Part shown: in pieces, positions 5,790 through 59,870 of the stretch
How the letters are laid out: each line of letters starts with the position of its first letter
Position numbering within the stretch: position 1 is the first letter of the stretch
From: Setoptus koraiensis
Lineage: Eukaryota; Animalia; Arthropoda
Direction: 5' to 3'
DNA length: 64,000 nucleotides
Assembly (NCBI GenBank): GCA_048013815.1
Contig: CM106585.1
Location: 9,238,001-9,302,000 of the forward strand
Translations under genes and position numbers: made by a program
Notes under the pieces: generated by a model
Told to the model about the DNA's origin: nothing
Databases searched by the model: none
Seen by the model: only the letters and a program-made list of their open reading frames with translations

Positions 5790-6832
5790 TCAAGATTTAT
5801 TCAGCAGATTAGCCACAGGAGGCAAGCTAACTCGTCGTGTATATCCGAGAGCCACTCGGCGCGGCCATGACCGTGATTCGGCCCCGTGTTACAACGGTTG
5901 TTGCTATTAGTATCATTATTATCATGCAACCAGATGAGATGTTTCACGATAAATACACACATGCCAGCTATAATAATTATACTAACGCGCGATGTAAACT
6001 AACTCGATTTTGTATAGCCATTCCGCCGACTACGCCATGTTTCAGGTGTGTTTGTGTGCCGGCGCCGGTGCTGGTGCTCAACAACGCCGGTGCTGGTGCT
6101 CAACAACGCCAGCGCTGGTAATAATATAATAATCACGGCAGCGTGTTACGGCAAGCCACTGTGGCCAGACTAACGGAAATTGTGTGAGACTTGATAGAGT
6201 TGTTTGTTTGTTTGTGTTTGGTGCTACTCACAATTGAAAGAAGCACAACAACAACAAGGCGCTATTATTGCTTGTTAGCTATCTAGCCAAACAGATCAGA
6301 TAAGGTCAGAGGCCTAGCTTGTCTGGCCAGAATAATAAAGTTAGATAAAGACATCAGAGGTAACAAAGTGAGCAGATAGCTAATTTTAGCAACACCCAAC
6401 ACAGGGGTCATCTTTAGAGGCACGCGCAACTACCAGAGCCAGATAAAACGGGCCGAGCAAGTTAAGAAAGCGAATAGAAAAGAAGCGAAATAAATGATCA
6501 ATGATTAATGATTGCCATTCCGTCACAGCTCATACCTAACCAGTGACCTATATAAATGAGCCGACAGCCATGATACATCGCTACTACGTTCTTTCAGAGA
6601 CGATTCAGCAACTTAGCCGAATTACAGTTGCACATAGGCGAAATTTACAGACAGGCAAACTAATTGGCCCAACTTTTGCAACTATCTCTTTGTCGTATGC
6701 AGCTGAACCATGAGCACCACAAAAAAAAGCCAGACTATTGAACAGATATGTGTATCGAAATTTTGCTTGTTTGCCAAATATCTAAATATATATCTGGCAA
6801 ATGTAAATAGATACACAAGGCAGCATTCGCTA

Positions 6833-6948
6833 TAGGGATGGCAGCGGTTAACCGAACCGAAGTTTTTTTTATGACTGAAAACCGAAACCGAAAAAAGACA
6901 CGCTCAACCCAACGTTTACGCATTTTCGGTGCCGCTTTGGCATCTCTA
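6833..6948. mobile_element. Possible degenerate hAT-type MITE
   Basis: Imperfect terminal inverted repeats TAGGGATGGCAGCGG / CCGCTTTGGCATCTCTA and internal AACCGAA repeats. TAGGGATG resembles Ac-family TIR starts. No clear 8-bp target-site duplication. Confidence 0.35.
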
Positions 6949-9566
6949 ATTTTGAAAAACATCAAACTTTTTGCCACTCTAATACAAAAAAGGTATGATA
7001 GTTTAATTTATTTAATTGTTGTTGAATAATTATCATAGCAATGATTTTTGCCACTTTGTTGCACCTATTGATTGCTTATTTTCAACTGACTGGTGGCCGC
7101 CTCGCAATGTCCTGGAGCTCAATTATTGATCACTGCAACATTTTCTATTCTATAGGATTGGATACATGGAAAGGCCTCTGTTAATTGAGACCAAAGGTGC
7201 AAAGGTGCAAGTTGGATTTCTGGTGCCGAGTCAGTCATAGAATAGCTCATTCGATCAATGATGAGCAACTTTGGCGTTGAACCTGCCCGGTTTACAACCT
7301 CTCACCGAATTGCTCCTACAAAGGCCAACACAATTTTCGAATAAAAAATGAAAATCGATGGACTTCCAACTTTTCGCCAACGTCACTGCGTTCGCCACCG
7401 CGAATCTATTGCGTGGTTCATGGTTGGACGTACTTTCATATGGTAATATATTATTGATAGCACTGGATTTTCTAAAAAAGGGGGAAAAAGAAAATTCCCT
7501 GCTATCACGAGCTGGCTTTTGGCAATTTTGGTATCCATTATTGATATGGTGCAAAATATCAATCGATAATTGATGAAGGTTGCACTCTGATAGATGATAA
7601 CACAGCAAAAACTAATAATGGTCGACAGGTACCAAAAGGTAGATTTTCAAGAGGAAGTGGCTTTTCTCCCAACGGGAACAGATACAATTGTGTGGCGAGT
7701 CCAGAGTGAAATTTGTTTTTAGAGTTAGCTCAGTCCAAATCTCACAGCACTGAGCGTATGACTGGTAAGTTCTTTGATGAACTGACTGACCATCTCTAGA
7801 AAAAAAGAGGAAGAGAAACAGTAAAGTGAGCGTGAAAATAAAGTAAGCTTGTGTGATGGAATATAAATCTAGTGGAGACCGAGACAGGTAATATCGATGA
7901 TACAATTACTAACACTGGACCGAGTTAACTAAGTTGACTGGTTCTTTTTAGAGCAAGTAACCTGGCAACAATATAGTTGCTAGCGTTTTTCTAGGCAACT
8001 TTTTTTCTAGAAAATCGACTTCATCTATTATATAAAATATGTGAGATGAGTTTTCGTCTCGGTCTTGCCCTTTGAAGGCCGAACCCCAACGCAATGCATG
8101 TATCAACGCGAAAAACTTTAAATGCATCAAATTCGAAAAAGCCCTGGGGCCGGTGGCAATTTGTTATGATCGGTATTAGGATATCATCTTGATGTGCAGC
8201 TGGACATTCTTAGATTAATTTCTATTTATTCTGGCCAGAGGAAATTCTGAGCAAAAATGATTGAATTTTGAGTCAGTCGAAAACTAACTGATTATTAGCG
8301 GAAGAAAGAGAAAGCAGATCATTATTATTCAGACTAGTACATTGCTCAACTAACTACCGGGTACCCAGAACATGAAAAAATTACAGGTTTACCATACCGA
8401 AATCACACAAGGAGCTATAAACCATCAAAATCCATGGTTGGCTTCCTTTCATTTCGGAAAATGTTGGGCAGAGAACAATTTTGGAGAAAAAAAAAATTAT
8501 CAGAGAAAAACACTATAATTCAGCTGCATTTTTACACTCGCACAGTCTAATTACTAAGTTATAAGGTTTCAGGCATCTAGCAGTAGGCCAGTATGAGTCA
8601 TTTCCGGTTGATAGTCAAATAAAGCATGTGACATCTGCTGCTAGTTGGAAGGCGCGCATTGCGTGTGCATTATCATTAGCTCGTTTGTTGGATATTGGCG
8701 CCCGCAAGAACAAAATCGTGTCAGATATTATCGGAATGGACGGAACCGAAAACGCGTCTATTTTATGCGTCAAAATAAGACATGGGGATAATAGAGGGAG
8801 GGACAAAATAAATCATTAATGGAGTGGAACTTTTTCTTGCCATCAGTTTCGAATGGATAATAAAGCTAGAGGAAGTAGGGGGATAGTTTCGTGTGGCATA
8901 AGATGGAGCTATCGCAATCGATGTTTCACTCAGATCTTTTGATTCAATGAAACACCATTGAATCATTCATTCGGTATCCCAATAGTGGTATCGTTACTAG
9001 AGATGAGCAGTGATCTGTTCTAGGCTCCTTGCTCGTGTATATCTTCTTGAGCATCGATCCCTCGTTATGGTCGAATAAAAATTTGAGTAAGTTTTACGAA
9101 ACTGCTCACACAAACAAAAATTTCCTCAATCAGGCACTTTTTTGGAGTTGTGACAGCTTAGATTGTATTTGGATATTCGTGCATGTTCTCTGAATCAACC
9201 TGATTAACATGCAAATGAGTTTGATTGTGAATTCGTGCTCACATCGAACGAGTTCGACGACTATTCGAAATTTGATGTTCGATGCTGCATCCAATCAAGC
9301 GAAGCAAACAACCTAAGTGAGTAGTTCCAATTCCAATTCATTGAAGTTACACTGAGGAATTCGAGAGCTGCTCAGTCTGGAAAAACTGACTGGCGGTCAG
9401 CGCAATAACTATATTATTGCGAGTTCTGTCTCTGTGCAGAGGCGATAGCTCACACCAACGCGGTCGAACAGTTAGCATGCGATCATCACATTGTGATGTT
9501 AACTACTGTCGGATAATTATTATGCGCCCTTTGTTATGTCCGAGCGATACTTTTCCGCTTTGCGCG

Positions 9567-9568
<2 letters not shown>

Positions 9569-9632
<64 letters not shown>
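9569..9632. repeat. (CT)32 microsatellite
   Basis: Direct reading. Confidence 0.97.
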
Positions 9633-9635
<3 letters not shown>

Positions 9636-12600
9636 TTGCGATAAATGGCGACGACGGCAAATAAACTCAAACTATTTGAATATATGAGAAATAGTTTAAG
9701 CACCATGAAAGAAAATCTTGAGCGTACTCGTGTGAATCGCCGTACTCGAGCACATCAGATTGTTGTAGTAGCCACGTTTGTGACGTAACATACTTTAATG
9801 GTGTATTTGGTGTTTGTATCTCGGCATGTGGCTTGCAAATAACAATATAGTTAATATATAGCAGCATCGGAGATTATTATCTTGTTTGTTGTCATGTAAA
9901 TTGAGTTGAGCCGAGTGTGGTCTGGTGCAAGTTGAGTTAAGTTGAATTAAGTTAACACCGTTGGCGCCGCCACCACCAACGACAACAGCTTAGGTGCTGT
10001 TCTATTTGACAGCCACCAACAACAACTTGAGCAAGAGAGGGCGCTCACATCCTGGCAGAAAACATTGCGTATAATGTGCTTATAGCAATGTGCATGGAAT
10101 GCATGTATATTCATGAATTAATACGATACATCCATTTACCTAGTCAGGCTCTTTATACAGTGGCATAAAAGTAAGCAAAATAATATATAATTATGTCAAG
10201 ACTGGCACTAGCTTTGGTCACAGCTCATACATAAATGTATGCTCCGTAGCTGTCAGTTGGGCCACTTTGGCCAGTGTCTGACCATCACACAAAGCTCAGA
10301 AAAGTCCAACTAGATTGACAGCATGCTGTTCGAGATGCGGCCAGGTGTCTGCTGGCACGGCTAGACAGAATCAAAAGAGATGGCAACAAAAATGAAACAA
10401 AAGAGCACAAAATTATGTAAATATAAATGTTGAGCCGCGATAATCAATGCTGGTCAATCGGTGATGCTTGTTAGCTGTGGGCTACAGTCAAACAAGTCCG
10501 CATCGTCGACGAACATCTCGAAAGATGTTTTTGTTACATAAAAGAGACGCGTAATAATAAAAATAATGAACCCATAATTTGTGCAATATGATATCGGCTT
10601 TGATTCGAAATTTTTGCGAAATACAAGTACTGTATCATAAAATTACTCTTAATGCATCATCGATCATTAGGGATGAATGGCATCATCGTTAGAACACTCG
10701 TTTAGAGGCGACACATCATATATTCAGTATTTATCCGTACCGTTCAGTTCAAGGCAATCAATGTAACTATTTAATCATTGTTTCATTGATTATTAATTAT
10801 TTATTATTTTGTAGGTTATGCTTGCCATGATGGTTCTATTATCACCCCAACGAATGTCAGTTTCCGGAGTGACAGTTGTAGTCTAGACAGTGTTGACACT
10901 CTTGCCCTGACCTGTCGTTGAACTCGGACATTAAACATCAGATGGGTTAGATGCAAATATGCATCAATAACTATAATGGATCAAACTTCGTAGTGAATTT
11001 CTGCTCCCCAAACTCGGCTGAAATTTTACGATTAAAATAGACAGGATCAGACTCATCTTTTCTGTGTTTTTATGTATCAAATGCAATTCGATATGATATA
11101 ACAAAAAAAAACGAAAAACAAAAAAGTATATGAAAGCATAGCAGAAACCATTGGTTTTTCGGATTTTTAATATATCTTTTCTTGCTCAGCTCGATCAGGG
11201 TAGTCGATTCAATGCAGCGCTTCGTCATCGAGAACGAAGTTCCCATTGTGAGTACATGGAAGATGTGATGCCGACCAGAAACTGACACATAATTTGCACA
11301 ATATCGGATGACTAGGTCTGAAATATGAGGCCTCCACTTTTATGGAAAACAGTGCTGAAATCAATCGTTGATACATCTATCTAACAGCACGAGCTAAATA
11401 TTTATTCACTGGCGAAGAATTTGTCGATAGGTTCAGAGAAAGGGAACGTAACGCTTCCGTTCACATTACTCGATAGCGGGCAAATGTTTTTGTAGAATAT
11501 GTATTTTATAGCTCCACTTTTTAAATTCTACACACTTTACATACTATCATTCGATAGGATTATCGGAAAGTAACTCAAACTCGCATAGGCTCGTTAAGAG
11601 GCTCTTCTCCGGATAGCCGCGATGAATCGCAAGCTGTTGAAGATAATCCAGATTTTGATGCGCCCGAGCCCCAAATTGACGTGACTGATGCCAACAAAGG
11701 TAACATCACGATTCAATAAAGCGCAAAATTTCTCTCGCCAACGAATTGTCACTAGATTCATTACTTCGTTCGACCAGTATTTGTTGTCCGAAACTCGATA
11801 GTGGCATCTGCGAGAAATTTTTCAGTCACATTATCCGCTCAAGGAGAACAATGTTGTTTAACTATCGTATGGCAAATCTCACAGATTCTTTTTTCGCAGA
11901 TAGTCCACAGGCAATCCGGGTAGTTGATGACATTTCTCATCACAGCATATGTCTCATAGCAGCTAGCCAAAAGCCTCTTTGGCCGACATGACAAGAAGAC
12001 TTTTTCGGCCATGATTTATTAGTGATTGTTCGACTTCGGTTGATATCGTGCCCGTGTCAACCAGTCAAGCTGAACCATGAGACAATATATGACTACCAGG
12101 CATCTATCTGAGATACCAGACAGGTGTTGGCGACTTATCTTATCTATGTCGTGTGCATCGCACTCAGATAACTCAAGGAAAAACGTTGAATTGCTAGCAA
12201 CCATTTCCACTTCGAACATCCGTTAACGTCAAATTTAACACGATCAGGCAATGTGATATTCTTGTCTTCTGTGAGAGGGCGATTTTCGTGCTAGCTGTTC
12301 ATTGTGTGAGAGGCCTGGTTTTCCCTTCTAGCAATTGACAACAACACTCATAAAGTATCATTCTGGCTGCTTGATAAAGGGTGCGATAAAGACAACATCC
12401 AACTCTAAATTTCCACAGATCTTGCACATAGAGATCACGATGATAGCCTATGATAGCGGCCCTTTCATATTGGTGTCGGCGATCGGACCATTTAGGGCGG
12501 CGATTTTGATTGGCGAAAATTGGCAGGTTCAGCTGGGGCCAATAGCGCCAGCGAGAATGTGCGGACAAAGGGATTAGACGGTGACTGGCGCACATTTCGA

Positions 12601-15600
12601 TTAGCGGCAGTTCATGAGGCCCCCATCTTAAAGATAGATCTTCAAAGGTTGAAAGTGTGAAAAAGTGCGAAAGAAAACGCACGTGAATAAGACAAATTTG
12701 CCATTGTGTGCGAAATTTCTCCTCCATTAGTGCCACGAGTTACGTAACATTCTTAACGCGCTTTTAATTCTTATTATCTATAGTGGGCGCGTCTGTTGAG
12801 CGTTATATCTCGCCGGCACGAGTGACAGAAAGCAAAGGTGCCCACTAGCCGAAACAGATAGCCGCTAGGAAGAAGTTAATCCGGCTGTCGCTCTAAAATG
12901 ATCTAGCTAGCCTGGCCAGCTAATCTGTTCAGAGGTCGCACCAATCTCAATTGCGCGTACTCTGGAGATTTCGAGAGGCTTATGTTAGCCTAGATGGTAT
13001 GAAAAGAAGGCCCAAAAATTTATCGGTTGACTCTGTGGAACTGGCAACGACAACGCAAATTCTTTTCTCTTTCTTGCGCTGGCCACTAATAAGAATTAAA
13101 CGGGAGCCAGAGGAACAATTTCAAAACTTATATATGATAAAGATATAAACAGAGAAAGAGGAAGGCGCGCACAGCGAAAACAGTTATATCTAGCAGTAAA
13201 ATATTATTGCAGATACTGTCTCACTTGAAATATCTCTTTCGCTTTCTTGATTCGCGTTCTACACGCACCATAAAAAATCACCCATTCAACAACTATATAT
13301 AAGAGCTACGTAATAATGTCCGTTCACATGGCTTAAGGCCCCATTCGAATGATATAAATATCCATGCATTGCACACCACACTAGATATGGGCCCACAAGG
13401 AAGCAAGCTACAACCTGTGTGTTCGATATGAGTTGCACACGCTATATCAGTGTTTTGCAGTTAGAAAACACTCGGAAAAAATAGAGAAATAGAAAATTTT
13501 GCTGCTCGATGAAAAGGTCTCGTTACGTGAGGTGACATCGATCAGTGGCGACGGATCTGATTCGATAAGACATGAGTGATGAGTCATCACTGGGGACGAC
13601 CGAATTCGGTAATTACCGCTCGGCAGTGAAGCGATTCAGCTGATTCTCATACTTTTCTGCTTACAAAATCTTGGTGTGACAGTGCGCAGTTCCCTTGGTA
13701 GTTGAAGCATTTCTCAGGCCATTTATTTTCGCCGTTTTCGCCAGATTTTCAGCTTTCAGAAAAATAGTTGAGATTGTCCAACTTCCACCGTGCCAATTTT
13801 TCAGAGACACCAGAGCCTTTGGCGAATTTATTCAAGAATTTTGGGCAAAATCGGATTCTTCCAGAATGTTCGATTTTCACTGGAATCTTCAAATACAGTG
13901 TGATGATGAGCACCGATTCGGTTGTCCCTATTCATCACATATTGAAAATCTAGTCGGCACGAGAGACGATAGAATGTGAGCAAAGGGAAATGCGCGTGAT
14001 TCGTGCATTCGTTGATTGCATAAATTATACCGTAAATTTATATTAAATTAGATTGCATTGAGTTGTAACAATCTCCGTGCCAATCCACTCATCATTATCT
14101 GATTTCGTAGAATACGTTGGTCCATTTTTTTGTCGGACTGACGAACTTCTCGTATAAGCGCCAGATGTCGGCAAGAGGAACTTATGATCATCATAGTTCG
14201 CTGTCATCTGTTAAATTTCTTTCCCTTCGTGAACTTTACCGTTCCTCATCTTTTGTTGCCTGCGTCCATTGTCCGTTTCTTGGAATCTATAATCCGGCCG
14301 ATCAATTCAGACACCAAAATACGCTTGCGCCCGCAAAAAAAAATATCCCCTGCCTAGTACACCATTAACTTCAAACTGACCGTGCCATATAACACTGGTG
14401 CAGCCCAATCTTCGTGACGGCGATCTGTTAGAGCAAGATTGGAAAAAAATGATCACAGGTTATACCTGTATAGCCATGGTGGCAAACGGGCAGCTCTGAC
14501 AACATCTGTCCATTCAATTTAATCAATGCTAAATCATGCAGGCCATGTGATTTTATCTCCGTCATATCCTATTTTTATTGTGTTCGTCAGCGATTGTTTG
14601 CATTGGATCACACACGCCAGCCCATTCTTTTGAAGATTTATTGAGCTCAGAACTGTGAGCCATCAAAACAATTTGCTTATGTATTGCTTATGATCCACCT
14701 AATTTCTATGAATCAAGTGTTTGTATATTCACTAACATGTGCGCCCACACAATTCTCTCTTGCTCGTGAGGGCTGAGGTTCGTACATTTAAAAGCGGCAA
14801 CTCTTACGATACAGATTTATCTGGTTCATATATCGTTGCCAATTCGATTTAGATCTATACCCTATACACAATAGAACGTAGCTCAACAGGATCGCCTTTT
14901 TTTTTGCTTCGTAAACTCCAGCCTCACAGTCATATCCGGCCAGGCCTGTTGGCTCTAGTTATCGATCAGCACTTGTTGCCAACTGTTCATCCATTAGGAT
15001 CGCCAGTAAAACAAACGTTGCAGCATACGAAAGTGTCTGCCGGAGCTTGTGAGCCATCTTTTCAAATCTCAAACCGGCGATTGACAATCAATTTTTCATT
15101 TTCCCGCTCTGTAGTGTCAAAAGGTAGCAGAAAAGTACTACTTCTCAAATTACCGGCAGAAATACAAGATATAATTGTCTCTTAATCCGCGTGGAGATTA
15201 TAAATCTTTGTTATATTTTGAAAAAATTTTCAAGGGGCAGAACGTCCACCTTGGACTGTCGTCGCTCAGGATTTCCCCTCACAAGTGTGGGATTATCACC
15301 GAAGAGATAGTTCTTCGAACTATCATTAATTAGTCCTTTGCTAACTGGGCAAAGTATCTATGAGAACGTCGAATGTATTTTACGATAGATGTATATTTAT
15401 TTTGTTTGCACAAACAGCAACAAATACACTGGCGGAAAGGATAGATTGTGCAGTGATCATGGCGCGTTTAGCCCCAGTTTCATCTGTGCACCTAACAAGT
15501 TGTATGCTGTAACATGATATCACAAATTGAGTGTGAATTATATATTACAATTCATGTCTAGATCTGTAGACGTCACTTCTAGACAGTACTATTGGTGACT

Positions 15601-15751
15601 GGATTTAAGAAACTTGAAAACTTCACTTTCAATTTAGTTTCTTCAGCGTTCCACTATAGTTGCTTGGCCTGTGTCAGACAACAGTTTATTAGCCATCTAC
15701 GATATTATCTGTTGCTATCACAAATAACCAGTGTGATCACGAAACAATACG

Positions 15752-16418
15752 ATGGGCCCAAGAAAAGGTGTTGCAATTCTTTTGCTGACAGCATTTTGTG
15801 TTGGCTCGCTGTTGACTTCGCAAGCCAAACCACTGAAAGCAAGTGTAAGTGTGATTGAAAATTTGCGTTAATCTGTGCATGATCCCCCAATGATGGCTCA
15901 TCTACAAGTTACATATTAATTAAAAAAACTATCAACATTATCTACGCACTCAAATGTAGAAGCGAACTATCTGCAACATCTATGGTGGTTGCGGTGAGGA
16001 CCCGCCGGAAACACTAAAACCTGATTCAGCAGAGTCTTACAGCGATGATCAAGATGATGTAAGTATAAATGAAAATTTGTCTCACTCATAGCTGCTCTAC
16101 AAGTTACCTCTTAATCAATCAAACAATCAAAATTTTCAACGCATGCGAATGTAGCCGGTCCTTTGCAACCAATGGGGCTGTAACAATGGTGAATATATAA
16201 CAGCACAACCTGCAGCCTACGGCGATGCAGATGACGGTGAAGATGAGTCCACATTAGCGAAACACGCCATGGACCACATTGAGAAACTTATACTGAAAAA
16301 TCCGTCAAATACTGGCTTCCTGGATATAGCCTATGGCGGTTTATCACAATGGGTATCGGGTGCAAAAGGTCCGACGGGCAAAGGAAAGTCTACGAAAAGT
16401 CGTAAACGTCATCATTGA
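15752..16418 (+). CDS. Unannotated 3-exon secreted peptide precursor (151 aa) with two CCAP/conoCAP-like Cys loops; exons 15752-15844, 15960-16058, 16155-16418
   Basis: Both introns are GTAAGT...AATGTAG, phase 0, 115 and 96 nt. The spliced frame is open: MGPRKGVAILLLTAFCVGSLLTSQA (signal-peptide-like) KPLKAS|KR-TICNIYGGCG-EDPPETLKPDSAESYSDDQDD|PVLCNQWGCN-NGEYITAQPAAYGDADDGEDESTLAKHAMDHIEKLILKNPSNTGFLDIAYGGLSQWVSGAKGPTGKGKSTKSRKRHH*. AATAAA lies at ~16675. Confidence 0.72.
15845..16250 (+). repeat. Tandem duplication of an intron+exon unit (~200-bp period) inside the peptide gene
   Basis: Intron 1 and intron 2 share GTAAGT..TGAAAATTTG and TCTACAAGTTAC..TTAAT..AAAC.ATCAA.ATT.TC.ACGCA..C.AATGTAG. 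The following exons share C-N-x(2-3)-G-C and an acidic Tyr motif. Confidence 0.85.
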
Positions 16419-17744
16419 TGATGCCTCAGCCGCATAAGCTGTCGATTGTTCGCCGTGGGCCCATATCAAACAGGTAATAATTGTAAGCCCACAGAGAAGA
16501 TTTTGTGTATATTTGCATCACTTTTGATACTGCAACAACAACCATCGACATACTTTCTCCCCCATACTATCGACAACAGCCTTGCAATTATCAATGTGGA
16601 CGGTCAATTCGTACAAAGTCGACGGTGACGCTGACCGTATGAGGTCTCACTGAAAAGAACTTGTCAAAAGCCCAGAATAAAAGCAACGATTGTTTATGCT
16701 CACATATCCATGTATGTCCACTATTACTTGCTAGAATGTCTCACGCGTAAGCTGTTTAGTAACGTTGTCAGGCGTGATTGTGTGCATCTGATAGAATTAC
16801 ATCACGGCTTCGCTTTTGCTCTGTGAGCAGCGGCCACTTCTTTCAATTATATCAATTCTGTCTGGCAAGTCCGATGTAGATACTAGAATTAGCTACCTGT
16901 CATTACATGTCGTACAAGCCGCAGTCTCAAATGTTTCTTGTTGACTGCGTGATCGATCCATCAAGCCTGCACAAATTGATTATAGCCTTGGCGAAATGCG
17001 ATTCACTTGCAAATTGTGGCAAACGATTATAACCGATCGACTAGTGTAAAATATATTTAAAAAATGGCTGTCTAGCGCACACTGCGACTCGTCGCAGATT
17101 TTGTTGTCGGCTGACGGAAAAAACACACCAGAAAAATGGTCTTTCCAAAATACTTCCCTTCTGAGCGGCTCACGTATGATAGAGGTGTTAAATTAACTCC
17201 AAGGCCAAGATTCATTTGATAAACTTGTTGACTTTGAAGTTCGAGTTGGTTCTCATGAACTGTCAATTTTTTGTTGTTGGATATGCTCGGTTTTCGTTGA
17301 CTGGGGCGAGCACTGTGCTTCATCTCCATTTCACAAGGAGCCAAGTCACCTCGTCTGTGAGGGGCTGCATTGGACAAGCTTCATTTTCGTCAATCATGAA
17401 AATCAAGAGCTGTAACTGGACATTTTTCGACCAGTACAAACTAGAGATGTTTGGCTGCCCATGATTATGCAACGATATTCAAATCTATTCTGGATCTAGA
17501 TGAATGTGATCTCACTATCGCGCATTGTGGATATCCATGAATATCTAGTGATGTGTTAGTTAGTGCGAGATTAAACTAACTAACGTTCGATCAAAAGGCA
17601 GCTTTTGCGTGAATTTTGTCTCTATGGGTTCTTATCCAGCCTGGATATGTATGGATATGGATCGGACGACCATCCGAATTGATTCACATTGGATACCCGA
17701 ACGCATCTCTAGTGTCAATCAAACTTTTCATACACTATCTGTAG

Positions 17745-17910
17745 AAGTGAACAATTGCACCGAAAAATTGTTCTCGCTTTATTCATACCGACAGCAACCA
17801 AACAAATTTATTTACTGGTGTCTTTCCAATTAAGCAAATCAATTGTCACAACAAAGTGTCCGACGATGATCATTATCAAGCTCAATGAAATATCATAAGA
17901 CTAACTCTAA
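17745..17910 (+). repeat. Interspersed repeat, copy 2 (homologous to ~3441-3610)
   Basis: Same colinear blocks as copy 1. Preceded by a GGATAT/GGATACCCG-rich segment ending in CATCTCTA (~17640-17710), which looks like a MITE end. Confidence 0.8.
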
Positions 17911-20900
17911 TAATTCGTCAAATTTTTCTTGCGCAATAGCAATAACGATCTATCGATACATCTAGTGTCATGTCGTCGAGTGTCATATAATATATAGCTT
18001 CGTAACAACAAACAATTGTGCCACTGCTAGCTAACCTAAACATGGCTGTTTCGCCCCAGAGCTTGATCTCTCTACCCGTTAGATCACCAGCAGCGTAAAA
18101 TTAATTAGATGCAACATGATCAACATAAATAACGAATTGTTGGCATGATTCATCTGTGTGTTGTTTGGTGCATTCGCTCCGAGAATAATAATAATAATAA
18201 TGGTAATTAATTGAAGTTTGTGTGGTCTCTTTATTCTGTTGTAGTTGTTGTTGTCGCTGTTAGCTGCAGGGCACAGAAGAGTGGTCAAAAGAAAAAACAT
18301 CCTCTCTACATACACACTCACAACATAAATTGCATTTACACTGACCCATTAACTGTTACTGTTATAAATCAAGTGCTTGGTTGGTTAGCTCACAAACACA
18401 AACCGAGCTAATGTTAGTTACCAACTATCGCCACTGGATCCCCAATACGGCTAATGACACTGTTCAACATACTGGCCCGTATTGGGGCCGAATGTTCACG
18501 CTGCGAGTTGTGCAAATCGATTAATCGAACAGTCAGCTGATTCAATATTCTAAGAAAATTCTTTGGCCATGATTTTTTTGTTTGAAATAAGCACGTAATC
18601 GCAGCCGTGCAATAGTTCAACGTGTAGATTGGGATTTTCCTAGTCCAGCTTGCTGAAAATAATATCCAATTATTAAATGGGCGGATAATATTTTGAGAAA
18701 ATGATTGAATTTTATCAGTGGGCAGATGTTGATTCCTTCTGTTCCGAGACGCTGCAGAAACATTAACTTGACATCATGATAAAGCACGATGGCAAATTGG
18801 TGCCTTGCATCTGGATAGCGCTTCGATGTGAGAAGCCTCAAAAACAAGAGCAAAAAAAACATATATCGAGTCTTGCATCTAGAGATTGTATGTAACGGTT
18901 ACATTGTAGATGCAGAAGGATAAAATCGTATCAACTGCAAGCGTTTGATGCCCACAGATAGAAAAAATCTCATTTAAAACACTGGTAGACAGTTTATCAC
19001 AGATCAGCTAACAATCGTAACGTCGTAGAAACATGAAATGAAATATATAATGAAAAAAATATCGCTCACGCGCGTTCTTGAAATCTTAGCATCTCTAATT
19101 GTTTGATCTTTCGCATTGCTGATTGAGCGATTGAGTTAGCGAATGCATGTGCTATATTCAGCTAAAACGACTTACTGTTACATAACAATTGTCGCATTGA
19201 ATCTCTCTGTAAGCTTTGTGTAAGCTGAGAGTGAGAGAGGGAATAAACGTAGCTGATCAGTTGCCCCAATAGACTTCCTGTTGTGATTTGACGCCACAAT
19301 GAGGCGTTGATCTTGTTTGCAGTTTGTTTTATCTAGACTGTTGAGACAAGTAACGACAACTGGTGAGACAGTTGTTGTTTCTTTTAAAGGGGGGAGCGAG
19401 CTTGATGGCAAGAGTGAGACAGCGAGCACCCGAGGGGTCCGGAACAGTCGCGGATATTCAAACTCATGTGGTGGAGGGCTCGCATTCAAGTGAATTGTTG
19501 TAAGTGGAGCAAGCTTAAGAGCAAGTGACAAGTGACAAGCATCTAGAGGGAGGGAGCGAGCGAGAGAGGGAGAAACAAGTGACAAGTGGCAAGTCGCCAT
19601 TGAGATTGGGGCCCAGAATGTAGTATGCAAAATACTTGTGGACCAACAATGGTGCTAGATACGCAAAGAGGATTAGGAAGTGGCGTTGAGAGATGATGAA
19701 ATCAGAGGTGTGGGCGCGATGGTGCCATAGAAAGAGGCAAAAAGAAAAAGAATGGACTGGCAAAGAATGCGCAAGAGGCTCGCTTGTTTGGTGGCCCACA
19801 TACAGATACATTTACTGTATGTGTCTGTATGTAGAAACTTGTTTTCTAGTTGAGCCAGTGGCCGCCGTGTGCCCGTCGTGACAAGCTGGCCAAGTAATGG
19901 TTTATTAGCCGTCGCTTGGCGAGACAGCCTGAGCCACTGGGCGACGACAACAACAACAACCCGATATTATTAATATCGATAATAATAATAACAGCAGCAA
20001 TAATAATGGTAATAATAGTGTTTTCTGGTGGGCCCGACTGGATGCTTCTCTGACAGTTCGGGGGTCCCCTCCAGGCCGAGCTCGTTTAGTTGGCCGCTTG
20101 CAGCCTGTTTGCGCACAACACAATAGATCATGACACTTATCAGTGATGTTGGGCCCCACTAGCTGACTTGACAGCTACAACTGTTAGTGTCTGCATAGAG
20201 AGATACAATTTGGCTAGACACACAATGTTGTTGGCGAATTTATGATAATTTATACCTTATGCACACACGGCATTGGCAACTTGTCTAGTTTGTGTCGCTC
20301 CACGATGACAATCGACAATCGACATCGATGAGCGAGGGCATTTGTAGCCCTGGCAATTGTGTCATGGCTGCACCCAAACACAACATTGTCGGCCTTGTTT
20401 CGCGTTCATTATTAGTCATTATTATTTGCACAATCATTATTATTTGTCCAACACATGACACTACATGCAATAATGTGGTTACGTAACAACAATTATTTCG
20501 ATTGTCTGGCCACCGCCGACAATCAATGGAATTCGAAGCAATCAATGGAACAATTTTAATTGTCATTGCGTAACACAACTAGCGCCAGACGAGCGAACAA
20601 ACACAGTACAGGTATATCAGGTTGCATCATCAGATCAGATCAGATCAGATACCTGTACGTTACGCAATATCGGGCACGCATCCGGCATCTGTGAGTTGTC
20701 AGTTGACATTGTGTGTCCAGCCAGAACTCGGTCATCGGCCGCGGCCATGGGTAATGGCTAATTTCGGACTCAGTCTGATTGACCCATTAGCGAGGAGAAA
20801 ATACGCGCCAAAATACGTGCAAATGCGTAGATAGTGGGGGCATTATATTATATTATATATATTATATAATATTATGCCGGCATTGTGGTGGTTATATCAT

Positions 20901-23900
20901 TATATAACAAGTCTCACAAAACAAGTCGCTTGCATGCGTTGTGTGTCTGCGGCTGTTTGTTTGTGGACGTAGGTGCAGAAATCAAATTTAAATAGTCATG
21001 AAGTGCACCGCCAGTCGATGGCAAACCACGCTGGTTAATTTGGTTAAGCGATCAGCCAAGCAGAAAGAACAGCCAGCCGTCTATTTGCCGGCCAGTGTGT
21101 GCAGCGCTGTCTGGCGAGTGATTCTTTTTCTTGCCGGCGCTCACTCAATATATATATATATGTCAAGTTATTCCATTACTGGCTCTACAATCGGACCGAA
21201 GAAAAGTAAAAGTGATGAGTTGAGGCGCGCCACCGCCAGCGTCACTGGTCGGCCGGTGCTCATTGAATTGGAATCGTTTCTGTTTGATTCTGTTTCCCTC
21301 TGTGGGGCCCCGTTCGGCTCCGTTCGGCCCCGCTCGGCCCCATTCAGCTGTGCAGGCGCAAACTCAATCGAGCGCCCATGTACGACTCGGTCAAAAGTGG
21401 CGCTGCAATCTTGTGATGGCACGCAGTGTGGGCCCCACAGGGCTCTCCACGCCCCCGCTCACTCGCTCATCTTACTAATACCCCGCTGATAGTTGTGTAA
21501 AAATAGCAAACTAGTTAGTTTACTGGTTAGCTATTTGCGCGGCAGCCATTTCTGGTATTTCTGGCAAGCTGGAAAACTGGAGAATTGCAGCCAGAAACAG
21601 AGCGAGAGAAGTGACTAGCATCCGACAATGGCGTACAATAGATAACAGCTGATACAACTTTATCCAGTGGCGGCCGCCAAGTATGAGGACTCTTCATGCA
21701 GCGGCTACATTTCTTTTTATTCTTATTTTTTTTTTCTTTTCTATAAATGTGTGCCATGCGTATTTATCGGAGCATCGCCGACTTGAGCATCATCATGGTG
21801 GCGCCCAAGTCTCAGCTCGGGCTCACCCATAACCACTGGCTAAGCTCTCGAACGTACGCCAGCGAGGCCTATTAAAGAATCGTTGGTCTCCTTCTTTCTT
21901 TATGCACTTCTCTCGCTGGCTGCTTGCTGGGGCGCCCGGCTGGCTGCTGGTCGCAGTTTGGCCCGGCCGGGGCTCGGCTAGGCGTGTGCAAAGTGGCGCA
22001 AAAATGGCATAATTCAATGGTTCAATTTAAATAATCAAAACTAACACGAGCGCGTGCGCCCACACAGTAAATACCCGTGCCCCACACCACGAGTTTTATA
22101 AGTCCATGATTTAGGTATAATGTGCCTCGGACTGTGCCACTGAGCGAGAGAGAGAGAGTGAGCAAAATCAGCCCGTGCCCATTCAACGGGGGCCCATTGT
22201 GTCTTGGGCGGCATGTGAATTCTCAGGCACTAAGCCGGGTCTTAGCTGAGAAGCAGCAAGTTGAAAAGTTTTCCACTTTTGCCACTGTCAGTCTTGAGCT
22301 TGTTTTGTGTGCTGTCGTCTCGGTGGGCCCCACCGTATGCCCCCACCTAAGCACCAGTGGGCCCTTTCGCGAGCGTCGCTGCGAGCAGCTAGGGACAGTG
22401 TTAAATGCGCAAAAATTTCAGGGGTGCCATTTTCGCTTTTAGCTCTTCCGCTCTCCGCAACCATTATACTTATGTGCTATGCATTTTCAATGACCGATGA
22501 AAACTAAAACATTGAAATATTTGTAAAGCAAAACAAAATCGCGCCAAAACGCATGCGCATAACCTACCCATTCCGAACCCAAATCGCACGCCGTCCGGCT
22601 CAAACGATAGCTTGACTCTGGAATGGGGCCCCCTCCTCCCTTGTGAGTTGGGCCCCCGTCCCCCGTCCCTCAGACTCTGAGGCTCAGAGGGCCTAAGATG
22701 AAATTTTAGGCCGACTAGCATGGTCCGATGTTATAAAAATGTGGCGATAAACCAGCCAACGGTTCTTTGCCGGCCCCCGCAAATAAGACAAGAAACAGTT
22801 GTGTGAATAATGTTAATCGATACTCATCAACATAATCAACTCGTTCGTGTAGCCGCCACTCCGACCGATAACTGTTATCCTGACGCAACTGGGGCCAATG
22901 TCGGTGGGGCCCCAGATAAGTAACATGGCGACCTTAGGCGCGACTTAATGATCGCCTCGCCCTCGACAAGACGGAGTGATGGTGCTGATAGCGGCTCGAT
23001 GCCCACAGATTGCAGCTTACTGGGATTAGAGACAAGATGAGCTGAAACGAAATGAAATGAAACGAGATTGAATGAGACGGGATGAGACGAGATGCACGAG
23101 GCAAGAAAATATGGGCGCTGGCCGCCAGAAAACAAGAACGGCCGCATAATACCGTATAATTTAATTATATAGGAGAGAGGAGCTGCCAGACAAGCTCAAA
23201 CTGATAATGAGAGCAACTTTATCAAATTTTTGCCTCTTTGCTGCCCATATTGATGACTCGCCAGAGCATTGAAAATCAATCTGGATGTTTTTTCAAACTT
23301 GGCCCATACACACACTGGTGCCTATCTTTTCGCGGGCCCAACAGACAGTGTTTTTCGGGGAGCTCGATTAGTGAGTCTGTACACGTTGCGAACGTTGCTT
23401 TTTTGCGCTTCTTTCGTCTCGCAAAACAACAACAATTCTTTCTCGCTTATCTCATTCACTGCGTTATGTAATAATGAAGAGCACATTGACTACATTGTAC
23501 ATGCACAGTGCGATACATCAGACAGTTAACTGGAGATGATTTTAACTAACGTTGCATAACAGTTGCAGTGAGCACGAAAATGAGAGATGGACTGTTTGCC
23601 AATCATCTCTATTTATTTGTATCTTGCATACGTTGCTGCTGCTGCTGCCGGTGCTGCCTATCTCAAGGACTCGTCATTACATAAGCGCTGGCATACGTGC
23701 ATATAATGCATATACCGTTACATGAATTGTATTGTCTACGACGGTACAATGGAGCGGTTTGTTTCTAAACAATAAATGACTGTCAAATGCAGTCTACGTG
23801 ACGTGTTATGACGCCTAGGGCATGGCGCTAGCAGCAAACAAACAACGAGGCAAACAATTGTGTTCGAAGCAAACAAGCGATAGATAGATTTTATTTGGGC

Positions 23901-26900
23901 AACAACAACAGCACAAAAGAACACTATTTACACTTGTCGGATGATGCAATATTGTGTGCAATTGTGTGCCGAATATACAATTGTTGAAGAATGAGCTTCA
24001 ACAATTGGGGCTCTATTTAACGGCAATCACACGCTTATACGGATAGCAGGCAAAACGATGATTAATTTCAAGTATTCGACTTTACAAGTGACTGGCGACA
24101 ATTAATTAATTAAGCGTGCGTCGTTGCCGATTGTGTTGTTGCCAAGAAAACAATCGGTTGTTTTCTTGACATTTGAACAAGGGCTGTTACAATACAATTA
24201 CTATACAATACAATTATTATTGCGCGCGCGCGCGCGCTTACGTAATTAACACATTAATAATTCACGAGCAACGAGCGAATTTCATCGAATCGTGTGACAG
24301 CGATATAAACAACAATTAATGGGGCTCGTTATGCGACAATGCAGCTGGCTGGCCGCAAATAAGGCCGGCCGCTCGCTGTAAACCGCATTCAGATAATATA
24401 TTTATCAGTAAATAATTAGTGTGGCTGTATCATTAGCGAGGTAGAGGCGCCCACTAATGATGGAGTTGACAGTTTTGCGACAGTGTGGCCGCTCGTAACG
24501 AGGCTCTTGTTGGCGCAACGAGGCTCTCGTTGCAGCAAACAAACAAATTTCGAATCATCAAGATCGCACAATTATCATACAGTTATTATTAATTATTATT
24601 ATTCTTGGTGTGCGTTCGCAGCTCATACATTTAGTTGCGTTTGGTCTGGCCAGCGAGCAAGCTGGCCAGACCGCCTCTATGTGCCCGGCGTCCAGTGGCA
24701 AGCTCGCCAGATGCCGGGCTGGCCGCTTTAGATGGGGGCGCCAGTTTGGCGTTGCCGCTCAACGAACGGCTGCCAGACGAGGCCGCCAGACGAGGCTGCC
24801 GGACGGGGCTGCAATTGTAAATCTAGTTAGTTATAACTCTATCTCTGTCGCTAGTTGGCGCACCACTTGTGAGTAATTGATGTTCGCTGTGCTCGAGTGG
24901 AACAATTGTGCCCCCTTTCAATTGAGACACCAAACACAGCTTGAGTGTGGCCAAATTTAGACTAGGCATCAACTGACTGAGCGAATGTGAGAGAAATAGA
25001 GAGTTTACACCAGTATGAGATGATCATTAACTCTACCACCACGGGCGCCACTCTGGCCGTTGCGGCCATTTTGGCCAGTTTGGCCATTTTGGCCTGACAA
25101 ATGGTCAGTTTGAGTGTGGTGCTCGCAATCACGACAACAATGGACAATGGCCAATGCGCAAGTGGCTTGTGATTAGGCACGCTCTGACACGGACATCTTG
25201 CATGGGCATCATTAGACGATTTTGCTGCCGTCGGTTCGGTTTGCCTCTCCCTCTTCGATGAGCTCGAACTGTGAACGGGCGAGAGGGGGCCCCAAAGAGG
25301 GAGCCCCAATGGGAGAGCGAGATGTTTGCTCTTTGATTGAACAGCAACAACAACAACAACAACAAGCGACCATTATTGTTGATTATTGTTGTTGTGCGCG
25401 TTATCAGCCAGGTATTTTAACGAGGCGGACACACAAGGGCCTCGCCGGGGTATCTTCGGATGTGTCGTGGTCGACATGTTGCCCGGTTTCTGGCCGGCAT
25501 AGAAATGCCAGGCCAGAGAGGCCAGTTTGTGCAGCCAGCGACAAACTGGCGCGCCGTGCCAAATCACAAACACCTAATGCCTTTGTTTGCTCAATGATAT
25601 CATCGGCTGGCAAGACACAACAATTGGCAAGAGAAACAAGTGATACACATTGAGATAGCTGCGTTACGTAATGCACTGCACTGATTCGCCATGCCAGCGC
25701 GATATCAGTGATATTATATCAGCGATACTATCATGTCAGTGATATAGATCTGTCAGGAAACGCGCACACCAGCTAGCTAGTCTAGTCTATACAGGTAGGT
25801 ATCCGGTGAGCCAGACGGTGGCGGTCGTGTTTTCTTTTGGAATCAATCAAACTCACTAACATCAGTTACAGTTAGTGCGACGACGCCAGACAAGTGCAAC
25901 CAGCGACATTGTTACATAACAAGCTGTTCGGCCGTCATGTTATCACCAGCCCACCCATTAACGGAAACGATGTTGGCAAATTCGCCAGATTATAACTGTG
26001 TTTCAGATAACGCGCTTGGTGTTGGCAAATTAAGACATCACCAGCCAGACACTTGAGATGTGATATCTCTTTATATATCCAGGTATATCAAGTGGCCACA
26101 TAGATGCTGGCCAGCTACATGTTGTGGCCATCATGTTGCCGATGCGCCGTTATTGAGACACTGACATCGCTGCCGATGCGCTCATGATGCCGATGCGCTC
26201 ATGATGCCGCTGCGCGATAATTCCAAAATAATCACATCATCCAACAAAACATGATGCCCACATTCACAAAAGTTGCCAGCCCTATGGCTGGCCAACTGCA
26301 TCAAAGTAGCTGCTGACATTTCTAACAACACTGGCTCACTAATTTGAGATAGCGACATATTTGGCAAGACGCTGTAAGCTCAAATGACAAACAACTTGTC
26401 AGCGTATAAATTATCGTCGCCACTTTTAATGCTCTCACTTTAACTCAATGCAATGTGGCTCGGCTGTCTATGTGCGCAAACGCACTGGTGAAATCAACTG
26501 GCACTTCCGGCCAAGTCGAAACTCATTGCAAGCAATCCGTCCTCAATTGCAGATGTGGTGGCTAAATTAAATGATGCAGCCTAATACACATATACCGTAC
26601 AATAACTATTCATGTTATTCTAACTGCTATTATCTCATTGTGAGCGTGGGTCAAATTGATCGGCGTTGCTCTTTTCAACGACTCTTTTGAGCAGTCTAAA
26701 CATCTCAGCAAACTCTTATGTATTTCTGTTTCAATAAATATGCAAATATCTACTGGGCCGAGACATATGCCAGCTCACAATAACAGTTGATCAGACATAA
26801 CTACGGCTGGCCAATGTTATGCTAGCGATTTTGCCGCTCTTTATTTTCGTTTCACAAAGAACAAAAAAAAAATAATTTGGTCGTAAAAGTGAAGAATTTA

Positions 26901-49393: not shown

Positions 49394-49855
49394 ATGTCGT
49401 TGGTTGTTCCAGAGAAATTTCAACACATTTTGCGTGTTATGTCCACCAACATTGATGGACGCAAGAAGGTAACATACGCCCTAACAGCCATCAAGGGTTG
49501 CGGAAGAAGATTTGCCTGTTTGGTTTGTAAAAAGGCCGATGTCGACCCGAACAAGAGAGCCGGCGAGCTTTCCGAAGAGGAGGTAGAAAAATTGGTCACC
49601 ATCATGTCCAATCCATTACAATACAAAATACCAACTTGGTTTCTAAATAGACAAAGGGATTTGAAAGATGGAAAGAATTCACAAGTTATGGCCAACGTGC
49701 TTGAGGTGAAGCTTCGTGAAGATTTGGAATTATTGAAAAAGATCCGTGCCCACAGAGGTCTCCGTCATTATTGGGGACTCAGGGTACGTGGACAACACAC
49801 CAAGACCACAGGTAGAAGAGGTAGAACCGTCGGTGTGTCCAAGAAGAAGGCTTAA
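49394..49855 (+). CDS. RPS18: 40S ribosomal protein S18, copy 1 (153 aa, intronless CDS)
   Basis: Canonical uS13 sequence [15 protein letters not shown]...[30 protein letters not shown] just after the stop. Confidence 0.98.
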
Positions 49856-55205: not shown

Positions 55206-58200
55206 ATGATAAATTTAGTTTCTTGCGCCTTTTCTGCGGGCTCTAAATGGAAACAAACAACTCATTCAGATAGAGTGTTTGATAGCTTTGATAGCCATGA
55301 GAAGAGAGTCGCAATTTTGCCACCTGCAAATTGCGAGCATCAGCCTGCAAAGTCGATGGACAATGACCATCAATCATCATTTGATGTTATGAGCCAATCT
55401 AAACTACAGATTTCATATGCACAACAACAGCGACTATCGGCAAGTAAAACTTGTATTACGATACCAACTACTTGCGAATATAACTGCAACAATATCAACA
55501 AGAGTGAAATCAGAACAGAAACTTTGCCAGTCGATCACGTGTTAAAATATGAAAACAGAGGCAACGGCACAATATCAACATTATCTCATCCTACAGGCCA
55601 CCACGGATGGTTGAATCCTGGTTCGGTAGGTTTCGCTTACGATTGCGATAATAATACCAATATTAGTGAACATCAATCATTTGATAATGTACCTCTCAGA
55701 GAGGAATTGTTACAGCACCATCAACAATCTATTTGTCTCGAATCAATGAACAAGCAAGCCATAGAATCTACGGAACCAAAGTGCAGCAACTCTCCACCGG
55801 ATACAGAAACCAAATGTGACTTGTTAGAGAACAGTAACATTGTCTCATCGTCAGTCAAACCAACAAAAGAAACCATATTTTTTCGCACTGATGAAACGAC
55901 TCTGTCGGAAAACGCAACTATGAATAAGTTAACAAATAATGATTATAATGAACATGAAATACTCGTAATCCATAAAGACAACGGAAGTGCCGCCACTCTA
56001 TTTTCGTCCAACAGTCTATGCAATTCAATTACAACTCGCATGCCAGTGTGGCTGACAAGATTGTTTTCAGGTCGTTGTCGTCAAGATTATTCAAGTGCAC
56101 CGAGAACTAAAATTTGTGACTACGCACCGTCAAAATGGATTGAACCAGACCGCCACCATGGTGGTGGTCAAACTAACCAAGACAGAACTCTCAGATCGCA
56201 TCAATTGTCTATGAGTGTAGATAACAACAGAAACATTTTGAATAAGTCCAATAGTTGTTATTCCAATCAAAACGATTCATCAGCTAATTTTATCAGTGCA
56301 CCCTTGCCCTGCATTGTCGTCAATAGCGATCAACGTGATCACCATCGTTCAATGGTGGATTGGTCCAATTTGAACAAAAACAACAAATATGGTGCGAATG
56401 AATCAGCGGTAATCGAATCACGACGTCAATCAGAGACTATGGTGTCACAAACACACAACACTTGTTTTTGTTGCTGTCGCCTAAAACTTAATCAACCCAA
56501 AGATTACAAATTCTATCTTTTGGTGTGCCTAATGATAATTGGATTGATCTCTGTAGTTATGGTTGCAGTTGCTTCAGTCATGATCTACTTAGGCAATGGT
56601 AAGTATCGCAGTTGAGTAGGTCATTCAGGCTAACAAAGCATGTGCTAGGTTTAACTCGACTAAAGAACTAAGAAAAAGTTTCTATTTGCAGACGGATATC
56701 GCACATCTGGACGTCCGACAAAACAATTCACATCCGTGCCAATATCAACAACAGCAGCGGCTCATAAGAAAAATTTCAACAGAGTTGACGCCACTAATGA
56801 TAGCACTAAATCGGGTCTCTGGATTGTTCACACAGCGGGCAAGTATATTACAAGATGATTGACATTTGATATATTGGATAGATATTAGGAGACGAGAGCG
56901 AGAGTGTTGTTGTTGATTCTGATAATTGTTGATTGTTGTGAGCTGATAGCGACAGTTTTAATTAGCAGAAGATAAGAGCGCAAGAGGACCGTTCGCTCTT
57001 CAGATAAGTTACGTGATGGCAGCTTGAGTGACAGCATTGAAAGTTAACTTGTCTGGTCTATCTTCAAAATGCCTGCACGTGGAGCCCTCATTAGACAGCA
57101 AAGTTGCTCCTCTTTTCAACTTTAGGAAAGCTTATTGCTAAAAAGAGAGAAAACAGTGCAGTGTTGATTATTGTCTGGCGTTAAACATGAGGAGCTTCAA
57201 ACAATTGTTGGCGTTGAAAAGAGAGGGAGAGATAGCGGGCCTCATAGAGGTCTAAAACAAGCCCTAGGTTATGGTTNNNNNNNNNNNNNNNNNNNNNNNN
57301 NNNNNNNNNNNNNNNNNNNNNNNNNNNNNNNNNNNNNNNNNNNNNNNNNNNNNNNNNNNNNNNNNNNNNNNNNNNNNNNNNNNNNNNNNNNNNNNNNNNN
57401 NNNNNNNNNNNNNNNNNNNNNNNNNNNNNNNNNNNNNNNNNNNNNNNNNNNNNNNNNNNNNNNNNNNNNNNNNNNNNNNNNNNNNNNNNNNNNNNNNNNN
57501 NNNNNNNNNNNNNNNNNNNNNNNNNNNNNNNNNNNNNNNNNNNNNNNNNNNNNNNNNNNNNNNNNNNNNNNNNNNNNNNNNNNNNNNNNNNNNNNNNNNN
57601 NNNNNNNNNNNNNNNNNNNNNNNNNNNNNNNNNNNNNNNNNNNNNNNNNNNNNNNNNNNNNNNNNNNNNNNNNNNNNNNNNNNNNNNNNNNNNNNNNNNN
57701 NNNNNNNNNNNNNNNNNNNNNNNNNNNNNNNNNNNNNNNNNNNNNNNNNNNNNNNNNNNNNNNNNNNNNNNNNNNNGCGCGCGGCGAGGGGCGGCGCGGG
57801 AACGAGCGAGGGCGAGAGAGAGACAGAGCGAGGGAGAGAGAGAGAGGGAGAGCGCGAGAGCAGAGGCCGAGGCGCGCCGCGCGCGCGCCGCGCGGGGTTC
57901 TGGGTGCGGTGGGTGCTGCGAGAGGAGAGAGACGGAGGAGAGCGAGAGGAGGGAGCGAGGGAAGAGAGAGAGAGCGAGGGAGAGAGGGACGTGAGTGGGG
58001 TGTGAGGAGGGAGAGCGAGAGAGGGAGGAGCAGAGCGTGTGGGGCTGTGCTAGTGTGGGGTGTGGGCGAGCGTTTGGGGGTGCGCGGCGTGAGGTGGGTG
58101 TGGGGCGGTGAGGTGAGCGTGTGAGCGCGAGTGCAGAAGTGCTGCGAGTGCGAGAGAGAGCGTGGCGTGAGGGACAGGGTCGTAGCGGGCGAGTTGCGTG

Positions 58201-59870
58201 ATGAGGGCGTGGGGTGCGCGTGTGGTCGCGTGGGTGCGCGCGTGTGGTGTGAGGGTGGCGCGCGGGGTGCGAAGAGAGAGAGAGCGGAGCCGGGAGAGAC
58301 AGAGAGGGGCGAGAGAGGGAGAGGAGGCGAGCGCGCGCGGGGGCGGCGGGGCGGGAGAGCGGGAGAGAGCGAGAGAGAGAGAGACGGAGCGAGAGGCGAG
58401 GGAGAAGGAGAGAGGAGCGAGAGAAGAGCAGGGGAGCGCAGGGCGCGAGCGCGGTGTGTGGGCGTTGAGGACGTGGGGGGAGTGAGAGTGGGGTGGGGGC
58501 GTGTGTGTGTGTGGGAGTAGGGGAGGGGTGTGGGGTGGCGTGCGTGGTTTTGTAGAGTGAGGTGGGGGTGGAGTGGGAGCGGCGTGTGTGTGTGTGGGGT
58601 GGGGTGTGGGGGGGTGGGGTGGGGTTGGGGGGTGTGGTGGGGGGGGGGTGTGTGGGGGGGGGTGTGTGGGTGGGGGGGTGGGGTGAGGTGGGGTTGTGTG
58701 GGGTGTGTGGTGGGGGTGGTGGGGTGGGGTGGGGTGTGGGGGGGGTGGGGGTGGGGGTGGGGTGTTGGGGTGTGTGTGTGTGTGTGGTGTGTGTGTGTGG
58801 GTGTGAGTGGGAGGGGGGTGAGGGGTGGAGGGTGTGTGGGGGTGAGTGTGGTGAGTGGGTGGGTTGTGGGTGAGTGGTGTGGAGGGGGGGGTGTGGGGTG
58901 GGGGGGGCGGGGTGTGAGTTGTGGGGGGTGGGTGTGTGTGTGGGTGTGGGTGAGGGGGTGGTGAGTGTGTGGGGTGGGGGAGAGGTGGTGAGTGGGTTGG
59001 GGGTGTGGGGTGGCGTTGGGGGGGGGTGGGGAGGGGGGTGTGGGGGTGTGTGTGTGTGTGTGGGGGGTGGGGGGGGTGTGTGGGGTGTGGGGGGTTGTGG
59101 GGGTGGTGGGGGGGTGTGTGTGGGGTGTTGGTGTGTGTGTGTGGTGTGTGAGGTGTGAGGGGTGTGGGGGTGGGTGGGGTGGTGTGAGGGGTGTGTGGGG
59201 GGTGGGGGGGTGGGGGGGGGTGGGGGAGGGGGGGGTAGGGGGGGGGGTTTGGGGTGGGGGGGGGGGGGGGGTAGGGGTGGGGGTTGGGGGGGGGGGGGGG
59301 GGTTTCGGGGGGGGGGGGGGGGGGGGGGGGTGGGGGGGGGGTGGGGGCGGGGGGGGGGGGGAATATAAATAAAATGCAATTAAAAGATATTAGCTAAAAA
59401 TAATTTTGGAAGAACGAATAGTCACTATTCTGTTTACAACGACAATAATGATGCTGCTGATGATGACAAACGTTACAAAAACAGCACCAAGTTACGTGAT
59501 ACAAAACAATTCAAGAGTGTCGACAAACCACAGCCGCAATCTGCACCAGTGAATCCTTCGGCAAAACTAGTGTCACCAGCATCGTCGAATAACGGACCAG
59601 CGTCGCATTCGATTCAATATCCATTGTGCGGAACGGACGGAAACGATTATTCAACGTTATGTCAGCTATTAAACTCTTCGTGTATTCACCAGATGGACAT
59701 CAGAGTGAAATCGATAGGATCTTGCAGTAAGTTGCACGTTAATTTGTTTTTGTATTTCTATGGTCGCTATATCTATATAAATGATCATTTGACACATATT
59801 TCACAACTTGTGAACCACAAGACAACTACCACTGCAATCCCTTCAGCGAGGTCGCGAGAGATGCAGACAC

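Follow-up and report, generated by a model that had tools for sequence, protein, structure and literature searches.

Crustacean cardioactive peptide (CCAP), a hormone of moulting and of the heart, ranks with the best conserved neuropeptides of arthropods, its nonapeptide being identical from crabs to flies, and the KR-PF-C spacing of the CCAP precursor leaves two residues between the KR site and the cysteine. The literature describes it as a cyclic amidated peptide. Published sequences give CCAP as PFCNAFTGC-amide and, for Conus villepinii, conoCAP-a as PFCNSFGCYN, conoCAP-b as VFCNGFTGCG and conoCAP-c as LFCNGYGGCRG (PMC5100318). The conoCAPs are themselves amidated, and they exemplify the recruitment of neuropeptide genes, CCAP included, into secretions (PMC5100318). 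For the eriophyoid mites, a published genome paper predicts 612 secreted proteins, the majority lineage-specific, and leaves neuropeptides aside (PMC7738191); our search of the literature on eriophyoid neuropeptides found no study, and searches with sequence strings returned nothing besides reviews of the conoCAPs.

The gene lies on the plus strand of a 64-kb window, by which we mean the whole stretch of DNA that was analysed (64,000 nucleotides). Like the arthropod CCAP precursor (PF11105), its predicted product is secretory, of a length (about 150 aa) that lies in the range of such precursors, about 120-170 aa, and provided with a KR two residues before the first Cys. In its first ring the two Cys are spaced C-x5-C as in CCAP, and also shared are the Asn that follows the opening Cys, the aromatic residue at ring position 4 and the Gly that precedes the closing Cys. 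A further Gly stands directly after the ring, which is the amide donor position in CCAP. Against these likenesses stand several differences. TICNIYGGC is identical to PFCNAFTGC at 4 of 9 residues (C, N, G and C), plus Y for F; the Gly after ring 1 is followed by Glu-Asp and not by basic residues, so that neither excision nor an amide is expected; the second ring, PVLCNQWGC, is shorter (C-x4-C) and has no KR before it; no exon taken by itself matches Pfam; and a polypeptide of ~113 aa is predicted where CCAP is a nonapeptide.

In the conoCAP precursors, as here, there are several ring variants per precursor, with C-x5-C and C-x4-C forms both present. The conoCAP-c ring (CNGYGGC) and ring 1 (CNIYGGC) are the same but for one residue, and ring 2 with its flanking residues (LCNQWGCNN) shares with conoCAP-a (FCNSFGCYN) a four-residue ring and an Asn two residues past it. 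Since ring 1 resembles conoCAP-c and ring 2 resembles conoCAP-a, both rings lie within the variation seen among natural CCAP-type peptides. This likeness is drawn on the rings alone and reaches into another phylum; the conoCAP copies are amidated, whereas neither release nor amidation is predicted here. Because the phylum differs, we regard the two-ring layout as independent of that in the conoCAP precursors, having arisen here through a local duplication of an intron and an exon (see below).

A transcribed three-exon gene

The gene consists of the following parts, given in window coordinates:

15752..15844, + strand: exon 1, 93 nt, with the start codon, the predicted signal peptide and the propiece; an X1 contig spans 15762-15844
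15845..15959, + strand: intron 1, 115 nt, GTAAGT...AATGTAG, phase 0; precisely absent from the X1 contig
15960..16058, + strand: exon 2, 99 nt, with KR (15960-15965), ring 1 and an acidic linker; the X1 contig spans all of it
16059..16154, + strand: intron 2, 96 nt, GTAAGT...AATGTAG, phase 0, the paralogue of intron 1; precisely absent from the X1 contig
16155..16418, + strand: exon 3, 264 nt including the stop, with ring 2, an acidic linker, predicted helices, the basic tail and the stop codon
16419..16700, + strand: 3' UTR, with AATAAA at 16676-16681; transcript extends to 16574 and the probable end lies near 16700

Joined, the exons amount to 456 nt and form an open frame of 151 codons plus stop. 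The ATG at 15752 is flanked by A at -3 and G at +4 and preceded by in-frame stops 6 and 9 codons away; left unspliced, the frame runs past the first donor for 8 codons and terminates inside intron 1. Splicing is documented by the public run X1, in which a 227-nt contig aligns to 15762-15844, 15960-16058 and 16155-16199 with 0 mismatches and with GT..AG at both skips. Because an intron-free DNA copy missing two GT..AG introns is very unlikely, we take this contig to be cDNA of a spliced plus-strand mRNA. A second X1 contig (16369-16574) crosses the stop codon, bringing the transcript cover of exon 3 to 16155-16199 plus 16369-16574. Runs X6-X8 contain 52-67% of the sampled words of 15650-16700, and may be RNA as well, given that this share is near the 0.73 calculated for a full-length mRNA. 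Three large poly(A) runs of 2026 yielded 0 reads, a count to be read with the mite's presence in those runs not established and with a shared species label that may be another organism's.

The three-exon gene is real and transcribed, and it is missing from the ORF-based annotation. The preliminary description had placed it outside the ORF track, where we find the locus listed only as fragments of 39 aa and 49 aa; it had also read two phase-0 GTAAGT...AATGTAG introns of 115 and 96 nt joining a 151-aa frame, all of which held on re-reading, and had proposed an RNA check of the junctions 15844/15960 and 16058/16155, which are exactly the places where one X1 contig joins all the exons. ORF-based annotation here overlooks short multi-exon peptide genes.

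Across 6000-26000 of the window, no ORF of at least 100 aa carries a Pfam domain, and scans for tRNAs and Rfam families were empty. The interval seems gene-poor for a compact mite genome, and more short multi-exon genes may lie within it.

The precursor, its rings and the search for relatives

The predicted signal peptide occupies residues 1-25 and comprises an n-region MGPRKG, an h-region VAILLLTAFCVGSLL that forms a 15-residue hydrophobic core (mean Kyte-Doolittle 2.6), and a c-region TSQA. Such a leader is typical of a signal peptide, and the -3/-1 rule would place its cleavage after Ala25. A propiece KPLKAS (residues 26-31) leads to KR (residues 32-33), which lies six residues past the predicted signal cleavage and two residues ahead of the first Cys. 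Three features define the remainder of the precursor:

15972..15992, + strand: ring 1, CNIYGGC, Cys36 to Cys42 (putative disulfide), C-x5-C as in CCAP
16164..16181, + strand: ring 2, CNQWGC, Cys68 to Cys73 (putative disulfide), C-x4-C as in conoCAP-a CNSFGC
16401..16409, + strand: RKR, residues 147-149, the sole multibasic site besides KR 32-33

Residues 34-146 contain no basic sites beyond single Lys. They begin with two units, of which unit 1 (residues 34-64) consists of TICNIYGGCG and an acidic linker with Tyr58 amid Asp/Glu, and unit 2 (residues 65-96) of PVLCNQWGCNN and an acidic linker with Tyr78 and Tyr86. Residues 97-131 come next, a region for which two helices are predicted with low confidence (at residues 95-112 and 114-131), the first of them amphipathic; an AlphaFold model of exon 3 reaches a mean pLDDT of 57, too low for a fold search. 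A basic tail, GKGKSTKSRKRHH (residues 132-151), contains the RKR site. Because KR 32-33 and RKR 147-149 are the only multibasic sites, processing is predicted to yield a single acidic polypeptide of ~113 aa (~12 kDa, pI ~4.3) that would carry both rings, and not two small peptides.

In a six-frame translation of the 64-kb window, the motif CN.[FYW].?GC occurs at these two sites only, with 0.05 occurrences expected per shuffled window; the two sites are paralogous and count as one event. The context of that event is a leader, a short propiece, KR, two residues, a C-x5-C ring and Gly. The residues that come next are G-E-D-P-P after ring 1 and N-N-G-E after ring 2. What the preliminary description had read from the letters at this level is borne out: a secreted precursor with a signal-peptide exon, in view of the n-, h- and c-regions and the hydrophobicity of the core; two CCAP/conoCAP-like loops, in view of the uniqueness of the motif against its expectation and of the match to conoCAP-c and conoCAP-a; and no canonical G-basic-basic after either loop, ring 1 running on into G-E-D and ring 2 into N-N-G-E. 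Its further remark that this is not an ordinary CCAP precursor also stands. Judged by its sequence, the gene fails formal membership of the CCAP family, there being no PF11105 or other Pfam match per exon, no G-basic-basic and 4/9 identity to PFCNAFTGC; it is not a CCAP precursor in the strict sense, and at most a remodelled one.

Pfam and database searches were run exon by exon. Pfam-A hmmscan (E up to 10) of each exon separately gave no family, and specifically no CCAP (PF11105), a result to be read with the caveats that 33 residues may lie below its filters and that the whole protein could still have a weak match, the exons having been scanned apart. With exon 3 as the query, a word-based protein search produced no candidate relative, a scan of JGI metagenomes no relative and the ESM Atlas no usable match. 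An exhaustive HMMER comparison of exon 3 with 1.84 billion representatives returned two matches only, both of them FG-GAP repeat proteins. Kinship with these was rejected, since the match rests on DIAYGGLSQW (residues 121-131) against a repeated bacterial AYGGxSQW and was judged a motif coincidence. LDL-receptor class A modules from the PDB were likewise set aside, their matches (E 0.4-1) running through the acidic DGEDES stretch only and being insignificant. Searched against the window by tblastn and blastn, the gene had no paralogue, and among plant peptide-hormone motifs inspected by eye (PSK, PSY, CLE, CEP and RGF) none fits. Exact look-up in a public gene-position collection recovered RPS18 as the only product of the window (one 1-kb Logan contig). 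The collection thus holds hardly any genes of this mite, and all results of the 'no relatives' kind are the weaker for it. RPS18 itself is a single-exon gene at 49394-49855, encoding 153 aa with the Pfam domain Ribosomal_S13.

Divergence between the two ring units

Aligned with each other, the two introns agree at 76 of 96 positions (79%), and 0/1000 shuffles reach their alignment score. Because the two introns are this similar, we conclude that the block of intron plus ring exon was duplicated in tandem, a feature new relative to the preliminary description. A reading of the introns as a dispersed repeat ('introner') was rejected, as blastn in the window finds only intron 1 against intron 2.

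The coding parts of unit 1 and unit 2 share 34% amino-acid identity, with 46% nucleotide identity in the codon alignment and 34% identity at third codon positions. Several indels separate them, all net in frame, and a 6-nt gap in the unit alignment marks the place where unit 2 is without the six bases that encode KR; lacking these codons, the second ring could not be released. In each unit the ring preserves Cys, Asn, an aromatic residue, Gly and Cys, and the linker is acidic and contains Tyr. The pattern fits rings that are constrained and linkers that are not, and would agree with one shared pharmacophore.

In a simple neutral simulation, the low protein identity of the units has P ~0.005; yet a gap-rich nucleotide alignment of the same units gives 76% identity, near the intron value, and we do not claim accelerated exon evolution or positive selection. 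That the introns are 79% alike while the exons following them are 46% alike could reflect constraint on the introns, gene conversion, or many small indels in the exons.

Possible roles of the product

The reading that we prefer, tentatively and with a probability of about 0.45, is that the gene encodes a 151-aa secretory precursor from the CCAP family, and that its product most likely serves this small-genome, eriophyoid-type mite as an endogenous extracellular 'tethered-ring' ligand. Signal peptidase would cleave after Ala25, and Cys36-Cys42 and Cys68-Cys73 would form two small rings in the ER. A prohormone convertase would then cleave after Lys32-Arg33, exposing Thr34 and leaving a CCAP-like ring at a free N-terminus, while cleavage at Arg147-Lys148-Arg149 and carboxypeptidase trimming would take off the end of the basic tail; no product would be amidated. 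The candidate target would be a receptor of the CCAP/NPS type or one descended from that type, the product being a CCAP paralogue with a tethered ring. We arrive at a ligand because both units, diverged as they are, keep the CCAP ring residues, and because KR stands at the prohormone position. Several points count against it. CCAP is described as amidated, and here neither ring is followed by a site for cleavage or amidation; unit 2 lacks KR, no exon has a Pfam match and ring 1 agrees with CCAP at 4/9 residues; and expansion of a neuropeptide family would be unexpected in a streamlined genome, and would suit a family of secreted effectors equally.

A CCAP-derived gene could instead have been co-opted as a secreted non-neuronal product, for example a salivary protein passed into the host plant, in which the two rings would provide a stable framework, the new activity residing in the acidic, Tyr-rich linkers or in the basic tail. 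We consider this unlikely, while giving it more weight than the explanations that follow. A small protein, secreted by prediction and with no detectable relatives, whose internal repeats diverge fast and with indels and whose processing is unlike that of a neuropeptide, is what such an origin would lead one to expect; in eriophyoid genomes, lineage-specific secreted proteins with no assigned role number in the hundreds, and expanded families are few (PMC7738191), and the conoCAPs are a precedent for neuropeptide genes, CCAP among them, entering secretions (PMC5100318). Plants, however, have no CCAP receptor, which leaves the retention of CCAP ring residues in both units unexplained, and a KR site that ends the propiece immediately before a ring is a prohormone hallmark; the basic tail and the contexts of Tyr that resemble sulfation sites are no more than impressions from the sequence.

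More doubtful again is a broader proposal, that in eriophyoids the CCAP gene gave rise to a few secreted 'tethered-ring' proteins, neither amidated nor excised, the two-ring gene among them; this family would either have put a new type of ligand in the place of classical CCAP signalling or have found a non-neural use, as in saliva that acts on the host plant.

That the gene encodes a lineage-specific secreted protein unrelated to CCAP, its rings alike by convergence or chance, seems to us improbable. By chance the motif would turn up 0.05 times in six translated frames of 64 kb; it lies in a precise CCAP precursor context of signal peptide, propiece, KR, two residues, ring and Gly; and its five- and four-residue ring variants equal those of natural CCAP-type peptides. 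The case for chance draws on the failure to detect significant similarity to any CCAP precursor or other protein, on a motif shared at just 5 fixed positions, and on the paralogy of the rings, which makes them one event and not two.

Very unlikely, finally, is a decaying duplicate, that is, a transcribed CCAP paralogue that has lost its processing and amidation sites and its function and whose frame merely persists: the missing G-basic-basic, the loss of KR in unit 2, the fast-diverging linkers and the low assembled depth in X1 (the sole run with transcripts) would accord with it, but the frame is intact across 151 codons and two introns, as are the splice sites, the Kozak context and the signal peptide, the four ring Cys and the N, aromatic and G positions are kept in both units, the indels between units are all net in frame, and a streamlined genome tends to purge dead genes (PMC7738191).

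A transcribed gene that retains the ring, has lost excision and amidation and carries the ring twice in one polypeptide would illustrate the remodelling of a rigidly conserved hormone in a miniaturised animal with a streamlined genome. The surprising part, a CCAP ring that would be neither excised nor amidated, is predicted from sequence. The gene supplies a concrete candidate ligand for tests of eriophyoid receptors, and were its product salivary, it would represent a new kind of candidate for the manipulation of plants by these crop pests.

Elsewhere in the window, a scaffold gap of 500 N occupies 57277-57776, and after it, up to about 59400, come ~1.6 kb of low-complexity tandem repeats rich in GA and in G/GT, among them a run of nearly pure G, 165 nt long, at 59197-59361 (GC 0.62, GC skew 0.68). 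The long ORFs listed there, such as the one at 57181-59379, are probably not genes, and the region resembles assembly-edge sequence.
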